From Octopus bimaculoides (Eukaryota), in contig NC_068982.1 in assembly GCF_001194135.2 (NCBI RefSeq), forward strand, positions 153,898,078 to 153,955,976: DNA of 57,899 bases, in the 5' to 3' direction. Each line of letters starts with the position of its first letter. Position 1 is the stretch's first letter. Both the position numbers and the translations under genes were made by a program. Positions 9,416-56,720 of the stretch are shown here, piece after piece. The notes under the pieces were generated by a model. The model had not been told where the DNA came from, ran no database searches, and worked only from the letters and a program-made list of their open reading frames with translations.

Positions 9416-11334
9416 GTTGAGCAGCAGGTTTTTTTTTTGGAATTTGAGTTGTCGATGACGTAGAGTTTTTTATGTGAGTTGCAAAGTTGAGTATTTTTGT
9501 TGTAAAATTGAGTGTTAATTATTGCTCTTAATTGTTGTTATTGTTCGTGTTTTTGTGTCTTCCCGTTGTGGAAAATGGAGAAAGCACCGGTAGGTGGCCA
9601 GAGTTATGCGGCCGCGACTGGAAAAGGAACAGAGGAAGGAAAGCTGGAAATAATCGAAATTAAGGTTGATCCGAAGAAGATGAAGGAATGTGAGAAGTTG
9701 CTGGCGAGGGTCGGAAACACGCTGACGTTGACACCGCCTGTGGAACTGATAGAAGGTGTAAGAAAGAGAACTGTGGTTTTTAAAACCATGAAGGTGGCAA
9801 CTAGAAGGATAGAGCTCGCGACAGTTGAGGAGATCGTGGAGTGCCTGAAAGGTATCAGAAAGCAAACAACCTTTGTAACTAGAGGAAAAAAATATGCCAC
9901 CGTGGAGGTACGATTTGCAACAGAAATAGAAGCAATTAAGAACTTTACGGAAGCTATACGATCGGAGGAATGGGTGCTGTGGCCGTCGTACTGTGGTAAA
10001 CGTGTGGCCAGAGTGCGAATAGGAAAACTACCCCCAGAACTAGATGAAGGATGGCTCATGACAGCAATAAAGTACATCATGAAGGAAGAGGCCAACATAT
10101 TGAAGGCCACAAGAACACAGAGTGTGGATTATTGGGGATATGGGATCGAACTCACTATCCAGGCAACAGTGGAAGACCTAAATAGAATTGTTGAGGAGAT
10201 AGCGCTACCCGACGACCAAATATTAAGAGTGAAAGTGGAGGGCAGACTGCCTACATGTTTTGCATGTGGCGAGAAAGGCCACATGAGGGCGAGATGCCCG
10301 CATAGAGAACCAACAGGAAAACAGGAAGACACGAACCAGGAAATAGAGACAGAGACAGAAGAAAACACAGCGGAGGAGGGATTCACGGTAGTGGAAAGAA
10401 AACGAAGGAGGAGTGGAAGAACAAACTCACCACCAGAGAAACAGAAAAAGAAGAAAGAAGAAATGGAAAAGGAAGCTGTAACCAGAGGGAAGGCAGATGA
10501 AGAGGTGACGGAGAAAGAGAGAAGGCAACTACTAAGCAGGTGGATTTACAAGAGGAGGGAACAGCTATAATGACGCAGGTTTCCCCAGCGAAGGAAGAGG
10601 ATTCGAGAGTTGAAACATCTGACGATGAATGGGATAAATGGTATGGAGTTCGAGAAGGAAATACATCAGTAACAGGAGAAGAAAAGAAAAAACCAAGAAG
10701 ATGGAAAAACAAGTGGAATTTTGTAACTTACTCAAAAAATAAGGAGACAGAGAAGAAGATTCTTAAATTCAAGCACATTATAAGAATTCAGTTACCAACA
10801 GATGTCTATTCTGAAAATGTGAAGGCCATTGTGGTCGATAGGGACACGTACGAAAAACTAAAAGACATGTGCGGAGATAAAATTGATCCGCCCGGAGTAG
10901 CGGTGATGTTCGACGAGCTGCCACCATTGATCGAACTCAGGGACTTGGAGCCGTTTATGAGGTATTAAAAAAAAATTTTTAATCTGAAAAAAAAAAGAAC
11001 AAAAAAGAAGGAAAAAAAGTGTTTTATGTTATAAATATATTTTTTTTTTTTTTTAAAGAGAGAAAAAACAGATAATTAAGAAAAACACATAGAAAAGTGA
11101 ACGATAGTAAATAGTTTATATAAACGATTCAAATGGTACTGCATGGTTATGGGGCCCATGCAGCCATTTCATTTCTTCATTATATAACATCTCATTGTCA
11201 TTCGTTTTATGTTTTGTGTCCCCATTGTGGTGTTGTGTCTGTCCTTGTAGTGTCCCCCTCTGTGGTATGACCGTAGTGCCAAATAAAGAAAACGTTGAGT
11301 AGCGGTTGAGTAGCAGTTGTGTAGCGGTTGAGTA
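9416..11334 (+). mobile_element. Non-autonomous ORF1-only non-LTR element (Tx1/L1-type ORF1, HAL1-like organisation)
   Basis: T-rich 5' leader, ORF1, A-rich spacer, ~200-nt 3' UTR, AATAAA (11282-11287) and an 11-bp tandem tail; GTTGAG(C/T)AGCAG at 9416-9427 and 11305-11316; no endonuclease or RT sequence between ORF1 and the tail. Confidence 0.65.
9575..10968 (+). pseudogene. Gag-like ORF1 protein of a Tx1/L1-type retrotransposon with CCHC zinc knuckle, one frameshift
   Basis: First ATG at 9575 (MEKAPVGGQSYAAA..); VKVEGRLPTCFACGEKGHMRARCP with CX2CX4HX4C at 10256-10297; K/E-rich tail; removing one AG from the GA run at ~10511-10523 joins ORF 9512-10570 to ORF 10540-10968 (..EKEKATTKQVDLQEE..), stop at 10966-10968. 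Confidence 0.85.
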
Positions 11335-23750: not shown

Positions 23751-24071
23751 GAATTAAAATATTGAGAAAAGTGCAGAAAATATGAAGGATGAATATTGAT
23801 CAGTAATTGCAATGATTTTAGATAAATTAACAAAATGACAAGATAAGGATTCAGATAGTGAAATTAAACTGAAGAAAAGAGAAGAAATTCTCTTCTTATG
23901 GTTATTTCTATAATTTACAATCAAGAATATTGTTCCATGAAATATAAACAAAAATTGGATAAAATTATATTAAAGTTTCAATATAATTACATAAATAGAC
24001 ACACAGTATTGATATGCTTATAAAAATAGTTATTACAAAAATTATTAATTACATACAGCCATTAATCAATA

Positions 24072-24077
24072 TTTATT
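24072..24077 (-). terminator. Candidate polyadenylation signal AATAAA of the hydrolase gene
   Basis: Plus-strand TTTATT, ~45 nt after the stop codon. Confidence 0.55.
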
Positions 24078-24121
24078 TGCCAAATAACAATTTGAGAACA
24101 ACTAACGGATGAAATTAAATT

Positions 24122-24790
24122 CTATTTGCTAATCAAAGATTCCCACTCAAATTTATCTATTACAGTAACACCAGCTTTTCGCATATCTGACACAGCTCTG
24201 TCAACTGGTGACTCTAGGGGTTCACCCAGGGTCTCGCATTGCCCACAAAAGAAATCCGAAACTCCATTAAGATATTTGTTCATGCAGAGAGAACAGCGTG
24301 GTTTATAATTTTGGTTACGAGCAGCACATAAGTTTAAATCAACAATAAAGTCTGGGGCACCAGATATATTTTTATAATGTTTGACAAGATTACTGGAAGA
24401 GTTACGAATACAGCTTGTTGTCACACATCCTCCAATGACAACAGTTGATATTTGGTTTCTCATTATCATATCCATCCAATTTTTAATGCCATCAGCATCC
24501 ATAATGTTTGTATCTGATTTAATTATACATTTATATTTTCTCTCAGCAACAATTGAATCAATTCCATCATAGAATTGAAAATCAGACTCTCTACCAAATG
24601 GCACCCTAGTGAATAATACTGGTAATTCCGGTGGTAGAACTTTTAAAAGGGATAAGCAGTTATTGAATGAAGACCTAATCTTTGTAATGTCTTGTTCACC
24701 AAAATACCTCATCCATCTTCCAGTGATAAATGAATTCTGTAGATCAATAAGGATGAGTGCTACGTTCTTTACAGACATTGACTGATTCAT
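24122..24790 (-). CDS. Isochorismatase-like cysteine hydrolase, 222 aa, uninterrupted CDS, with a CxxC-x12-CxxC insertion
   Basis: ALILIDLQNSF (D16), CIIKSDTN (K91), TVVIGGCVTTSCIRNS (C127): the D-K-C triad of the cysteine hydrolase superfamily; clean open frame in a repeat-rich region; acceptor TTTTGTTTTATTTGCAG ends at 24798, 8 nt before the ATG at 24790 (second Met at 24778). Confidence 0.9.
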   Translation of the reverse strand: MNQSMSVKNVALILIDLQNSFITGRWMRYFGEQDITKIRSSFNNCLSLLKVLPPELPVLFTRVPFGRESDFQFYDGIDSIVAERKYKCIIKSDTNIMDADGIKNWMDMIMRNQISTVVIGGCVTTSCIRNSSSNLVKHYKNISGAPDFIVDLNLCAARNQNYKPRCSLCMNKYLNGVSDFFCGQCETLGEPLESPVDRAVSDMRKAGVTVIDKFEWESLISK

Positions 24791-24797
24791 GTAGACT

Positions 24798-24820
24798 CTG
24801 CAAATAAAACAAAACAAATT
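24798..24820 (-). other. Splice acceptor (polypyrimidine tract plus CAG) for the hydrolase exon
   Basis: Minus strand AATTTGTTTTGTTTTATTTGCAG|AGTCTACATG. Confidence 0.7.
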
Positions 24821-26289
24821 CACTTCAATAATTGTAAGAAACAACAACATATTATACATTCACTTGATAAATAAAAAGAAGTAAAATAAATGGTCAAAAA
24901 AGTTAAAACATTATACTTGGAGTGGAGTGGGATAAATGGTTATTTATTGAGATAACAGGATGAAGGAAAAGAAGTTACATATTTTAAGAAATTTGAAAAT
25001 GTTTATTTTTTATATTTTGGACTTTTTAAAAAATAATTTATTTACTTGAGGAGAAGGAAAGATTGTTGATTCCCTGACGCCACCAGACCTGAAGACTAAG
25101 TATGGCTAGATGTGGTTAATAAAGTTAAACAGTTGGTAAGAAGCAATAAATTGTCAATAAAACCTACTCAGTTAAAATTTCATTGCAGCTTTTTTCCATC
25201 ACTCAGTCACTCCATATAAATAGTGCATATTTCTCTAGAATTTCTCATTTTATTAAGATAAATAACTTTTTAATGCATCTATTAAACTAGTTGTGATCTT
25301 AGTTACGTTATGTATTGATGATAACTCTTTACACATGTGTGTGTATGTGTGTGTGTTAACATTAGTTTGAACAAAAATCAAAACCTTCAATACACAATGA
25401 GGTATAAAATATATTAGAAAAATGAAGTTATACTTCCATGGAAACAGAATTTAAAAAATTCAGCACAGAGATATCTTTGTAGGTTCCTGCACTACATAGC
25501 ATAGCATATTCTTATCTATCATCCAGTAGTTGTAGCAGAGGTGGTGCTGGTGTTAGGTTTCAGTATTATAGCAAATGTTTCACAAACTGTTTACATTAGT
25601 TAAATTTCAGATCTTGTAAGTGTGTGTGTGTGTGTTCTAGATGTTGGGTATCTTCTCATTTGGTATGGTTTCTCATACTTTATTTCTATCTTTTTATACT
25701 TTGACCTTTCCAGTAGTCTTCACTTTATGATGAAGTTTTGGCCACTGTATTTTCATTTCTAGATGTGACTTAGCAGTTGGGGGAAGGGGTCTTTTTTTTT
25801 TTTTTACTATATGCTTCAGTGTAGCAGTGTTCTTGTATCACTGCTTGAATTTACTTTCTGTCATTCCTATATGACATTTTTTTTTAGTATTGGAGGTAGG
25901 GCTAATGGAATTTATTTTATTAATGACTACCCCATTCCTTTTCAGGCTCATCTTTTATTTTTGAAGGTCCTTAAATTTGTGTGATATGAGGGATATTTGG
26001 TTGTTATTACAACAGGGTGAGGAAGAATACAGGGTTCTCTTGTTAGCAAATAAATACATTGCTGTTGTAAAACCTTGAAAGGTAGAAGTGGAATATTAAT
26101 GACCAATAACCAGATAAAATTCAACTTAGTACCATATTCTCCGAGAGTAACAGCACAGATTAACTCAGACTGTGCCATTAGGTATCATTATCAAATCAAT
26201 GGAGAATGTTTAGTATTTACACCACAATACTGATTTATGAGGGAGGAAGTTGTGCTGGTGGCACTTTGGAAAATCATTCGAGCGAAGTC

Positions 26290-26570
26290 GTTGCCAGTGC
26301 CGCTGGACTGGCTCCCGTGCAGGTGGCACGTAAAAAACACCATTTTGAGCGTGGCCGTTGCCAGTACCATGTGACTGGCCCTTGTGCCGGTAGCACGTAA
26401 AAGCACCCACTACACTCTCGGAGTGGTTGGCATTAGGAAGGGCATCCAGCTGTAGAAACTCTGCCAAATCAGATTGGAGCCTAGTGCAGCCTTCTGGCTT
26501 GCCAGTCCTCGGTCAAATCGTCCAACCCATGCTAGCATGGAAAGCGGACGTTAAACGATGATGATGATGA
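26290..26570 (+). mobile_element. RTE-type 3' end or derived SINE (family C) with (GAT)n tail
   Basis: ..GGAAGGGCATCCAGCTGTAGAAAC..CCCATGCTAGCATGGAAAGCGGACGTTAAACGATGATGATG; a related tail ends the RTE fragment at 30987-32260. Confidence 0.85.
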
Positions 26571-26754
26571 AAGAAGAAATGAAATGATAATCATATAAAA
26601 AAAAAAAAACTAAAAAAAAAACAGTAAGAACTAATAGAAACCAACCATGAAAGCCAATAACAGGAACTAGTAAGAACCAACAATGGAAAGCAGAAGGAAG
26701 TAGTGGGAATCAGTCACAGGAACAAGTGAAGAAAGAGATTCTATGCAGTTGTTC

Positions 26755-30559: not shown

Positions 30560-30589
30560 GTGTGTGTATGCATGCATATATATATATTA

Positions 30590-30870
30590 TCATCATCATC
30601 ATCATCGTTTAACGTCCGCTTTCCATGCTAGCATGGGTTGGACGATTTGACTGAGGACTGGTGAACCAGATGGCTACACCAGGCTCCAATCTGATTTGAC
30701 AGGGTTTCTACAGCTGGATGCCCTTCCTAACGCCAACCACTCCGAGAGTGTAGTGGGTGCTTTTACGTGCCACCGGCACGAAGGCCATTCAGGTGGTGCT
30801 GGCAACGGCCACACTCGAAATGGTGTATTTTACATGCCACCTGCACAGGAGCCATTACGTGCCACCTGCA
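30590..30870 (-). mobile_element. Family C (RTE tail) copy next to a (GT)n tract at 30477-30570
   Basis: Near-identical inverted match to 26400-26570. Confidence 0.88.
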
Positions 30871-36128: not shown

Positions 36129-36280
36129 TATCATCATCATCGTTTAACGTCCGCTTTCCATGCTAGCATGGGTTGGACGATTTGACTGAGGACTGGTGAA
36201 ACCGGATGGCAACACCAGGCTCCAATCTAATTTGGCAGAGTTTCTACAGCTGGATGCCCTTCCTAACGCCAACCTGCCCT
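36129..36280 (-). mobile_element. Family C (RTE tail) copy; a further diverged copy at ~36720-36960 (+)
   Basis: CATCATCATCGTTTAACGTCCGCTTTCCATGCTAGCATGGG.. Confidence 0.85.
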
Positions 36281-38624
36281 TCCTGTGTGTGTGTGTGTGT
36301 GTATTATATAAATTATATATACAAGACTTTCTGTGAATTCAAGAGATTTTGTGTTTTCATCCAAAATGGAGATGAACACTGTTCCCCTACGTGATCAGCT
36401 TGAAAAATTGTTAATATATTAAGATCTTTTTCTTAACATGGAACCAAATAAAGAAATTCTATCCGCCAATGCGGTGTTGAGCACTCATTCTCATCATTCA
36501 ACATTAATGTATATAACTCCCACTCTCTCTCTAGGTTACTGTTTCTGCCCTCATTCTAGTTAACACTTACTCTCTTTCTCTTCTTTCTCTCCCTCTCAGT
36601 GGCTGGTTAACCATGGACCTCCTCTACAGCAAGACATCTGTTTCTGCCTCTCTGTCACACTCTAATCTTTCATCTGACAGAAGATCGCCTCCTCCAATGC
36701 CCCCTCTCCGCTCAAAGACATTTTGTCTTGCAAAGTCACTTAGTGACTAGTGCAGGTGCCACTTAAAAAGCACCCAGTCCACACTATAATGTGGTGGGCA
36801 TTTGGAAGAGCATCCAGTTGTAAAAACCATGCCAAAACTGACCTCGCCTGTGCAAGTACTATGTAAAAAGCACTCAGCCCACTCTACAGAGTGGTTGGTG
36901 TTAGGAAGGGCATCCAGCCATAAAAACCATGCCAAAACAGACACAGAAGCATGGCACAAAACAAGTAGGCTGAAGAGAACAACATACAGAGAAACCTTAA
37001 GTACCCTATTAATGGTCCACAAAGAGATTGTAATCAGAGTACCAAGGGGCAGAAGTTATTACAACCCTGCTATTACAGTTGGTGAATGGTCAGTTGTGAT
37101 ACCAGGATTGGTACAACAGGTTCACATGGGTGGTAATGCATTATTCCTTGTACATTTTACTAAGACTTGCAACAATGTGCAAGTGTCTAGCTGTTTGGAT
37201 TCTGAGATCATTCAGAACAAGGAAAAAGCAAATTGTTTATCCTATGGAGAACATTTTTTTTCAGTCATCTGGACTACCACCAATCCTAAATATGTTCATC
37301 TCAAAGTATCAAACACACAGTGAAACTCAAAGCAATCCAACACCGCTGCACTGAAAGGACTACATCAGTGTAACAGATGAGCTACTGAGAAAAAGCAAGA
37401 AGAAATGAGATTCTACTCCCTAGAGAAATGTGAAAGATATGGGCTGGATTCCACAATAAGGTGCCAGGAGTCCTTCGCTCTCTATCTTAATGTACTATGG
37501 AAGTTTGGAGTTCAGGAGCCTACAACTTCTCAGTACTTTGCCAGGGACGGGCCTGAGAGATCTGTGAGGAAATGTCCAAGGAACATAGGGACAAATTTTT
37601 ACCTGAGATGCTGGATGAGCCCATGTCACTATGATGGCTTGCTGCTTCACCATGAATTTGAGGTAAACTAGCAATAACACTAATAAAGATTCCCCAGCAT
37701 GGCTACATGCACTGGCTTAAACCACTGAACGATAAAAGACACACACACACGCACACACACACATACATACATATATACATATTTATGAAGAAAGATTTTT
37801 TTTTTAATTAAAATTATTATAATTATATGTATATAAATATATTTTTTAAAAATCTTAAAAATAAAACAGAAAGACATGTACCTTTTGAAATGCGTCCACA
37901 CACACTATGTCATTACTGTTATTACCATTTAGCTTAATATAATATAGTTTCAGGCTACAAAAAAGTAACAAAATTAAAAAAGGAAATTAAGCTTTATTAT
38001 AATATGACACTGGGTATGTTGAAAAAAATACATTATTACGTTTTTCTTTTCTCTTTTTTGTTTTTTTTTTTTTTGGAATAAAAAGAAATGTTAATAAAGG
38101 AAGTACAAAGCTTAATTTTCTACGTTTGTTTTCAGTTTGTTTTTTCACTTCCTGAAACTTGAAAAGGTCGAGTGCTAGACTACATAACATTTTTAAATGT
38201 ATTCATAATTTTTTTCAAGCACTTTGTATTATATTTTCTTTAAACATTTATTACTTCTTTCCTCAGCTAACTTCTCGTTTTCTATCCATTCAAATTCTTT
38301 ATTTTAACTGTTTGTTTATATTTGGCATTACATTAAGGAATANNNNNNNNNNNNNNNNNNNNNNNNNNNNNNNNNNNNNNNNNNNNNNNNNNNNNNNNNN
38401 NNNNNNNNNNNNNNNNNNNNNNNNNNNNNNNNNNNNNNNNNNNNNNNNNNNNNNNNNNNNNNNNNNNNNNNNNNNNNNNNNNNNNNNNNNNNNNNNNNNN
38501 NNNNNNNNNNNNNNNNNNNNNNNNNNNNNNNNNNNNNNNNNNNNNNNNNNNNNNNNNNNNNNNNNNNNNNNNNNNNNNNNNNNNNNNNNNNNNNNNNNNN
38601 NNNNNNNNNNNNNNNNNNNNNNNN

Positions 38625-38920
38625 GCGAAAACACCTAAAAGCTCCACGAGGCTCCGGCAGGGGATGGTGGCGAACCCTGCTGTACTCTTTCACCACAACT
38701 TTCTCTCGCTCTTACTTCCTGATTCTGTTGTGCCTGTAATTCAAAGGGTCAGCCTTGTCACACTGTGTCACGCTGAATATCCCCGAGAACTACGTTAAGG
38801 GTACACGTGTCTGTGGAGTGCTCAGCCACTTCCACGTTAATTTCACGAGCAGGCTGTTCCGTTGATCGGATCAATTGGAACCCTCGACGTCGTAAGCGAC
38901 GGAGTGCCAACAACAACAAC
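38625..38920 (+). mobile_element. SINE family B copy (head lost in gap), (CAA)n tail
   Basis: Near-identical to the reverse complement of 3927-4230. Confidence 0.9.
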
Positions 38921-55161: not shown

Positions 55162-56429
55162 GAATAATTTTGCTCAATATTTACTTCACAACTCTGAGGA
55201 TAGAAATGCTTCGAAAATAACCACATAAGTTCTTGCAGTATTTTTCTTTTGCTATCAGCGCGAATCTCTTTCAGAAGATTATATAAGATTATACAGAAAA
55301 TTCGTCATCCTATGTGAGTAGTTCTGCTAAAATACTATCAATACCAAACTTTCTCTTTGAAGTTTCTTTACTGAATGAGCCAACCAATTAACAAGTAATT
55401 TAACTAACCTCACCATCTTTGAAAGCTGTCATTTGAAATTTTAATGAGTGTTTTGCTCTTGTTAGCCATACACAAAATTAAAGGTGGAAATAAAGTTCTT
55501 GAAGTTAATTTTTCTTACGTTTTAGGAAGGACAAAGGCAAGCTGGATCCATAACTTACTTTCATACTTCTGAAATATTTCTAAATTTTTGATTTAACAAT
55601 TTTTCCTGTAATCAGCAAGCTGGAGAGAAAGTAAAGTAGTTTTTCTTTCGGCAGATATCTCGCAATCAATCAAGGGCCTTACATTTCAACAGCCTATCAC
55701 AAAATCAGGTATGTGCGTTTTGACAAACTATTGATAACAATCTCTGACACGTTACTTGTTTTCAGAACTACTGCCAAACGAAACTCGCGAATGGGAGTCT
55801 CACAAACACTTTTATGCTATTTACATTACCTTGAATTATACATTTCAAAAATTTGATTGCATGTTTGTGCTTTAAACTTACCACCATCTACGTATTTCTC
55901 ATCTACTAAGATTCATAACAATAAACAATATATAAAAGAATACATTTCTCAAAATCATTCCAGTAACTTTTTAAATAATTGAACACAAAATGGCTGTTAA
56001 CATATAGCGCTTGTGATGAGTATGATCCAAGCTTTCTTTATTTCATAACGTGATTTCTGTATATGTCACCTTAGTGTCGTGCACTAATACAGAACGATAT
56101 ATAGTATCACGGAACGGGATAGACACCAACTGTTTCCACTTGATGTATTCCCAAATGCTCTGCCAACAACTGTAACCAATCCAAAACAACTCTCAACGAA
56201 CTATAATAATTTCTCAACAATTTCTTGCGACTCTACGAACTCACGAACACCTTTCGACTTCCTGCGATTTCTCATCTCCTTTTCTTTATTTGGCACGCAG
56301 GTCATAACATAGAGGGGACAGATCAAAGACAGACAGAACACCACAGTGGGGACAAAAAAACAAGACTCCATCTTAAGGTCGTAATTCAACAATATCGTAC
56401 TTCAGCGTTGTAACCTATTTGCAGTATGA

Positions 56430-56720
56430 GTAGGAATTCCTTTCTTCGACCCCAAAATTGGCTATAGTTTTTCTCTGCTTTGATCGGAGAATGCGAGGCA
56501 CGAGCCACAGCCTTCGTATCAGCGTCTTTATATTTGTGTAGCATTACTGCTCCCATGCTGTATTTATATCGCACCCACTTCGTGTAATCTATCGAGATGT
56601 CTTCTTTCACGTTTTTATTAAGTAGATACATGTTTTGATTCAATTCAGAAGTGCACTGAAATGTCTCTTGGAAGTTTCGCGACCTGTAATAAACGACACT
56701 GGTTGTCCATTTTGCCAAGT
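56430..56720 (-). mobile_element. Decayed Gypsy RT-connection/RNase H fragment
   Basis: LLNKNVK..YSMGAVMLHKYKDADTKAVARASHS..AEKNYSQ matches GAVL.H....AVAHASRSL..AEKNYSQ. Confidence 0.75.

Follow-up and report, generated by a model that had tools for sequence, protein, structure and literature searches.

Isochorismatase-like hydrolases (Pfam PF00857) are enzymes of a common alpha/beta fold with an Asp-Lys-Cys triad, represented among solved structures by the Oleispira antarctica hydrolase 3lqy, YcaC (1yac, 4wgf) and PA1677 (8cib). Two groups within this superfamily, N-carbamoylsarcosine amidase (CSHase; 26st, 3eef) and the triuret and biuret hydrolases TrtA and BiuH (6xix, 6azo), hydrolyse small amides and ureides through a cysteine thioester. 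The nicotinamidases/pyrazinamidases (PncA and the animal Naam) combine the superfamily fold and triad with a metal-binding Asp/His/His site, whose Asp and two or three His lie in the segment linking the Asp and Lys strands. Transfer has been proposed for members of the same superfamily in animals: the isochorismatase genes of plant-parasitic nematodes, mentioned in PMC4901422 and PMC5664098, are regarded as bacterial transfers. The nematode cases concern one parasitic lineage, whereas the octopus gene analysed here is common to molluscs, cnidarians and amphioxus and falls in no donor clade.

The gene lies in a 57,899-nucleotide stretch of the Octopus bimaculoides genome (contig NC_068982.1), called the window below, to whose first letter all octopus coordinates refer. 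Its coding sequence is intronless and occupies 24122..24790 on the minus strand, from the ATG at 24790-24788 to the TAG at 24124-24122; the 222 codons preceding the stop specify an isochorismatase-like cysteine hydrolase (P0001), and the clean 222-residue frame described in an earlier note on this DNA, which did not name the strand, is borne out. Extended upstream, the stop-free frame reaches another ATG at 24859, and the resulting frame of 245 residues is longer than any open reading frame obtained by shuffling the whole window 100 times (maximum 202 residues) or the local 11 kb 200 times (maximum 145 residues). As read from the sequence, a predicted 3′ splice site at 24798..24832 (minus strand) precedes the start codon: the block attattgaagtgaatttgttttgttttatttgCAG comprises a possible branch point, a pyrimidine tract and a CAG that ends at 24798, 7 nt 5′ of the ATG. 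The 7 nt in between (agtctac, 24791..24797, minus strand) are attributed to the 5′ UTR by homology. Downstream, the proximal 3′ UTR (24060..24121, minus strand) carries an AATAAA at 24077-24072, 45 nt past the TAG; the hexamer region is aligned with that of Argonauta, and the blastn alignment continues to 24060. Both the acceptor directly before the ATG and the polyadenylation hexamer after the stop had been pointed out earlier, and both are found at these positions. It is predicted that the Octopus transcript would start in an upstream non-coding exon, joined at the acceptor 7 nt 5′ of the ATG. An upstream coding exon may also be compatible with the sequence in Octopus and Argonauta, since no in-frame stop separates acceptor and ATG in either of them. 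The window contains no second copy or pseudogene of the hydrolase gene. Contamination was considered and rejected, given that the gene lies on the 192-Mb chromosome CM046602.1 (assembly GCA_001194135.2), resembles its host in composition and is matched by an orthologue in Argonauta.

Elsewhere in the window, several features of mobile or repetitive character were observed. At 9512-10968 (plus strand), a gag-like frame of 352 residues contains a CCHC zinc knuckle (22 bits to Pfam zf-CCHC) and overlaps a 142-residue frame that comes after it; on its sequence, this is probably a retrotransposon remnant. At 56386-56718 (minus strand), a 110-residue frame has weak, sub-cut-off Pfam matches to RNase H-like domains of reverse transcriptases and is probably a decayed fragment of an LTR element. 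A SINE-like dispersed repeat of ~150-190 bp occurs in three copies in the window (26411-26594, 30589-30752 and 36130-36279) and in several copies at the Argonauta locus (L002 1826-1977 and 7862-8043), at 72-93% identity. Runs of N (1253 in total) at ~430-1400, ~30900, ~35100 and ~38330-38630 adjoin CA/GA/TC microsatellites and long homopolymer-like tracts; they are assembly gaps at simple repeats.

Single-sequence searches of PDB sequences and of NCBIfam with the octopus protein returned nothing significant; a family profile and a fold search were the only routes tying it to solved enzymes. The PF00857 model scores P0001 at 26.0 bits against a gathering cut-off of 27 (E 1.2e-5, residues 11-131 only) and matches 25 of 34 family members at E<=1e-3, with a best E of 3.2e-12. 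The AlphaFold (AF2) model had a pLDDT of 85.8 when built with 8 sequences, and a pLDDT of 95.0 and a pTM of 0.91 when built with 34. Its comparison with the PDB by Foldseek gave 124 matches at E<=1e-3, and the best 50 of these 124 were all isochorismatase-like hydrolases. Among the matches listed, TM ranges over 0.45-0.59 and identity over 11-18%; they include 3lqy, YcaC, TrtA, BiuH, maleamate amidase, RutB, CSHase, nicotinamidases and VibB, with E values down to 4e-9 and TM of 0.55-0.59 for the group of 3lqy, YcaC and PA1677. On the strength of the model, the octopus protein is assigned to the isochorismatase-like cysteine-hydrolase fold, which has a three-layer alpha/beta architecture. With a Pfam score under the cut-off and 11-18% identity to solved enzymes, its chemistry therefore rests on analogy.

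In the alignments, Asp16, Lys91 and Cys127 stand at the catalytic positions of TrtA, 3lqy and CSHase, homologous to the triad of the superfamily. Asp16 (codon 24743..24745, minus strand) aligns with the catalytic Asp of the VVIDMQ motif of the triuret hydrolase 6xix and is D in 90 of 94 family sequences, while Lys91 (codon 24518..24520, minus strand) aligns with the K of 3lqy and is K in 92 of the 94. Cys127, the putative catalytic thiol (codon 24412-24410), closes the nucleophile loop C122-V-T-T-S-C127 (24410..24427, minus strand) and is C in 91 of the 94; in the profile alignment it matches TrtA Cys162, which is Ser in the C162S entry 6xj4, and the loop GCTTSGCVR of N-carbamoylsarcosine amidase. 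Fold search and profile alignment agree with the earlier note in placing this protein, as a divergent member with a D-K-C triad, among the isochorismatase-like cysteine hydrolases; the three residues are present where it had placed them, and its motifs GGCVTTSCIRNS and VDLNLCAARNQNY occur as given.

Likeness to CSHase and TrtA is local. The Asp-strand motif IDxQxxF is common to the octopus family and the CSHase/TrtA/BiuH group. The loop VGCTTSGCVR of CSHase is the most alike to the family loop GGC(T/V)TTSC(V/I)R, which reads GGCVTTSCIR in octopus; yet 26st matches the family profile at the nucleophile loop only (22 bits over 27 residues, profile 101-127), and 3eef compares with the family at E 0.8-1.3. 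The TrtA loop reads AGVTTEVCVQ, and likeness to TrtA amounts to two short stretches. Full-length matches to the CSHase/TrtA group are weak (E 1e-6 to about 1). The nicotinamidases, at Foldseek ranks 26, 34 and 49, have fold and triad in common with the octopus protein but differ in their metal-binding Asp/His/His site, which is missing from it: its sole His, H138, falls outside the nicotinamidase metal-site region, which agrees with the earlier observation that ligands of this type are lacking. In contrast to the superfamily at large, the octopus protein has motifs of its own, namely a GxW after the Asp strand and LC(G/A)ARxxNY, as well as a Cys4 insertion that was not found among the solved structures retrieved by the search.

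The family to which the octopus hydrolase belongs is rare. An exhaustive profile search of 1.84 billion protein cluster representatives recovered 128 of them at E<=1e-3, of which 76 reached E<=1e-10. Word-index searching was far less productive, yielding only 8 proteins with the octopus query (the query itself, Argonauta hians at 79% identity and six at 52-58%) and 15 with a 26-sequence alignment, in the latter case missing members of the query itself; the exhaustive profile search and a Haliotis query were relied on instead. Named members comprise, in molluscs, Argonauta and the abalones Haliotis rufescens, H. cracherodii, H. rubra and H. asinina; in Anthozoa, Nematostella vectensis and the corals Oculina patagonica and Desmophyllum pertusum; in cephalochordates, several Branchiostoma species with two paralogues; among algae and protists, the green algae Pyramimonas and Mesostigma, the dinoflagellates Breviolum and Symbiodinium and the amoebozoan Pelomyxa; and in bacteria, a Geobacteraceae MAG. 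A scan of GTDB (one genome per bacterial or archaeal species) with the bacterial sub-alignment as query found the bacterial form in 66 species, mostly MAGs of Desulfobacterota, Myxococcota and Planctomycetota. All named members are annotated as uncharacterised, hypothetical or isochorismatase-like domain-containing; no ISOC annotation was met on the named relatives retrieved, and a full-text literature search returned nothing on the subfamily.

Nineteen positions are nearly invariant in all branches: D16, Q18, F21, G24, W26, K91, G121, C122, S126, C127, R129, S131, D151, L152, C155, R158, N161, S194 and M203. This set marks the family as a distinct subfamily, small in size and defined at the sequence level by IDxQxxFxxGxW, GGC(T/V)TTSC(V/I)RxSS and VDLxLC(G/A)ARxxNY. 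The last of these contains the signature D151-L-x-L-C155-A-A-R158-x-x-N161 (24308..24340, minus strand), which hardly varies among animals, protists and bacteria and may contribute to the pocket or to substrate binding.

In the bacterial members, the hydrolase is fused at its N terminus to an EF-hand domain, and a calcium-regulated cysteine hydrolase would be unusual. The bacterial gene neighbourhood, with two-component signalling genes, desulfoferrodoxin and trehalose genes, gave no functional clue; on the Geobacteraceae contig, the EF-hand/hydrolase gene (L013 8001-9035) comes after a block of two-component signalling genes. Two eukaryotic gene models were also observed to depart from the usual length. 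In Breviolum minutum, the hydrolase domain sits inside a much longer protein (P0151, 658 residues), which may reflect either a fusion or the merging of gene models. On a gene-dense eukaryotic contig with Tctex-1, actin and TMEM138 as neighbours (L080 9900-10576), the called product P0016 begins at an internal Met; this gene call is too short, because the conserved LLIDLQQSFTVGSW strand is encoded in frame directly upstream of the called start.

The Cys4 insertion, C166-x2-C169-x12-C182-x2-C185 in octopus (24236..24295, minus strand), follows the last core strand, precedes the C-terminal helix and resembles a zinc knuckle or ribbon; the earlier note makes no mention of it. Its consensus in the animal branch is CxxC-x(10-20)-Cx(1-2)C. 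The four Cys are kept in 44-45 of 45 sequences of the insertion-bearing group, a group chosen by the Cys4 motif itself and composed of all named animal members and several further eukaryotic contigs; named carriers outside cephalopods are Haliotis spp., Nematostella, two scleractinian corals and Branchiostoma, which has two paralogues. None of the 14 bacterial sequences has the insertion, and those of algae, dinoflagellates and the amoebozoan lack it as well, the motif match in P0047 falling outside the insertion. Pfam DZR_2 (double zinc ribbon) matches one family member (E 3.9e-4), and the insertion region of the AF2 model has a pLDDT of 87-88. Judged by its sequence, the insertion most likely binds a structural zinc.

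Relationships within the family were examined with a neighbour-joining tree (200 columns, 100 bootstraps). The octopus protein falls in a cephalopod clade with 98% bootstrap support, within which Octopus and Argonauta group with a paralogue A (99%). P0009 is sister to the cephalopods (81%), and the point-estimate tree then places Haliotis and amphioxus paralogue 2. Further clades comprise Anthozoa (87%), dinoflagellates (85%) and the bacterial EF-hand forms (94%). The backbone of the tree is weak, a single clade of all insertion-bearing sequences being recovered in 3% of bootstraps, so that the monophyly of the animal sequences rests mainly on the shared insertion. Identity to the octopus protein is 43% for Haliotis and amphioxus, 38% for cnidarians, 32-38% for algae and 32-34% for bacteria. 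Paralogue A and a second cephalopod-like paralogue, B, lie on one contig (ERZ21867824 ctg114833l; L001 10001-10669 and L012 10001-10672) in the same orientation, ~27 kb apart; this contig, like the other ENA and Logan contigs used here, is assigned to a taxon by its tree position only. No copy of paralogue B is present in the octopus window.

Gene structure adds a second line of comparison. No intron interrupts the coding sequence of Octopus, Argonauta, the two cephalopod-like paralogues (A and B), Haliotis rufescens (663 nt) or Nematostella (684 nt). The same holds for a further contig with the insertion-bearing form, whose neighbouring gene carries a SLED domain; we take this domain to be metazoan-specific and read the contig as animal. 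The Branchiostoma paralogue P0014 (L011 7951-9882) has two introns in its coding sequence, one of them within the conserved domain. Several N-terminal isoforms were observed in the Branchiostoma P0014 group, and the P0179-P0181 group is 45-48% identical to Haliotis.

Argonauta, both paralogues (A and B) and Haliotis share with Octopus a pyrimidine tract with AG situated 7-50 nt 5′ of the start codon; the earlier description of an intron-free coding sequence preceded by an acceptor is supported. In paralogue A, paralogue B and Haliotis, the upstream exon would be non-coding, because an in-frame stop separates acceptor and ATG. Between Octopus and Argonauta, the alignable sequence within +/-10 kb consists of the coding sequence, ~35 nt at the acceptor and ~60 nt of 3′ UTR, plus dispersed repeats; apart from matches of the latter kind, the acceptor block is the only upstream stretch that aligns. 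Logan contig L004 departs from the genomic contig exactly at the acceptor, the two contigs being from different species, and Logan contigs L005 and L006 keep the pyrimidine tract, terminate in microsatellite and look genomic.

Coding sequence and host agree in composition (GC 35.6% and GC3 29.6% in the coding sequence, 33.6% in the flanks). The gene is selectively maintained: dN/dS is 0.18 between Octopus and Argonauta (dS 0.71), and 0.11 and 0.15 within paralogues A and B. Distribution, tree, shared gene structure, composition and dN/dS together mark the gene as old, host-like and constrained. We therefore consider it likely that the locus is a functional gene with a single coding exon, inherited vertically within cephalopods and from old animal stock rather than recently acquired, and that it encodes a probable cytosolic amidohydrolase with a putative zinc-binding insertion. 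Inheritance within cephalopods is vertical, and the gene very probably stems from an early animal ancestor and was then lost in many lineages.

The alternative with most in its favour is that the insertion-bearing gene came from a microbial eukaryote or a bacterium, either before the split of cnidarians and bilaterians or into several marine lineages. It would account for the very patchy distribution among animals and for the coding sequence being intronless in Octopus, Haliotis, Nematostella and the SLED-linked contig, and it accords with the scatter of a rare family over eukaryotic supergroups and a narrow bacterial set, with the insertion-bearing form on the gene-dense eukaryotic contig L080 and with the 3% support of the backbone. 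A tblastx comparison of the Nematostella, Branchiostoma, Haliotis and Octopus loci likewise detected no cross-phylum microsynteny, only the hydrolase gene itself matching. Against such a history, branching within phyla tracks that of the species (with 87% support for Anthozoa and 98% for coleoid cephalopods), introns interrupt the domain in amphioxus, and the coral sequences group with the non-symbiotic Nematostella rather than with Symbiodiniaceae; moreover, the tree holds no bacterial or other donor clade containing animal sequences. We regard an ancient or repeated transfer as unlikely. It is equally doubtful that the zinc-knuckle form is a gene transferred in this way and retained in few phyla for a particular small amide or ureide metabolite; were it true, a new enzyme activity would reside on a patchily kept foreign gene.

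A transfer confined to the cephalopod or mollusc lineage fares worse. The earlier note had put the gene forward as a candidate for horizontal transfer, and a bacterial cysteine-hydrolase gene would, on this account, have entered cephalopods or molluscs and been domesticated by gaining a 5′ UTR intron. The intronless coding sequence with an acceptor directly before the ATG, the bacterial members of the family and the few relatives returned by the word-index search are in keeping with it. The proposal is nevertheless unsupported for octopus, cephalopods or molluscs, since Cys4-bearing homologues occur in Haliotis, in Cnidaria (Nematostella and corals) and in the cephalochordate Branchiostoma, while the bacterial members lack the insertion, are fused to an EF-hand and group in a clade of their own. 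By identity, the octopus protein stands no nearer to bacteria than to green algae and is closer to Haliotis and amphioxus, and its gene shows no compositional anomaly. Nor does an intron-free coding sequence behind a predicted 5′ UTR intron signal a recent transfer here: the intronless state is old and, being common to a cnidarian and molluscs, is no mark of a recent event. The earlier note had named nesting in a clade of vertical descent, introns being shared, as an outcome that would speak against its own proposal, and this outcome is largely observed. A lineage-specific transfer is thus very unlikely. That the locus is a decaying retrocopy or an unexpressed frame devoid of present function, as a single coding exon amid transposon remnants and repeats could suggest, is extremely improbable in view of the low dN/dS against Argonauta at a dS of 0.71 and in the paralogue pairs, the intact frame in all species examined, the invariant triad and signature residues, and the finding that between the octopods only the coding sequence, the acceptor and the proximal 3′ UTR are still alignable.

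Under the favoured reading of an old animal gene, the octopus protein is probably a cysteine amidohydrolase, and by analogy with its solved relatives a course of reaction can be proposed. The thiolate of Cys127 would attack the amide or ureido carbonyl of a small substrate, giving a thioester acyl-enzyme with release of ammonia or an amine, and water would then hydrolyse the thioester; Asp16 would act as acid/base and Lys91 as its electrostatic partner. This is the cysteine-thioester mechanism of CSHase and of TrtA/BiuH. The pocket is probably lined by the family-specific residues W26, R129, C155, R158 and N161. As the protein shows neither an N-terminal extension nor an evident signal sequence, it is likely to be cytosolic.

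The gene is not a bacterial acquisition specific to cephalopods, and a false lead is thereby removed. The finding is of modest significance, since both its fold and its probable chemistry are familiar ones. What is new is a sharply conserved and uncharacterised subfamily of cysteine hydrolases, with an animal form that bears a putative zinc knuckle and a bacterial form that bears an EF-hand. The subfamily has survived patchily, in octopus, squid-like cephalopods, abalone, anthozoans and amphioxus, and so offers a tidy case for weighing gene loss against ancient transfer; it is also a candidate for a new amidase activity.
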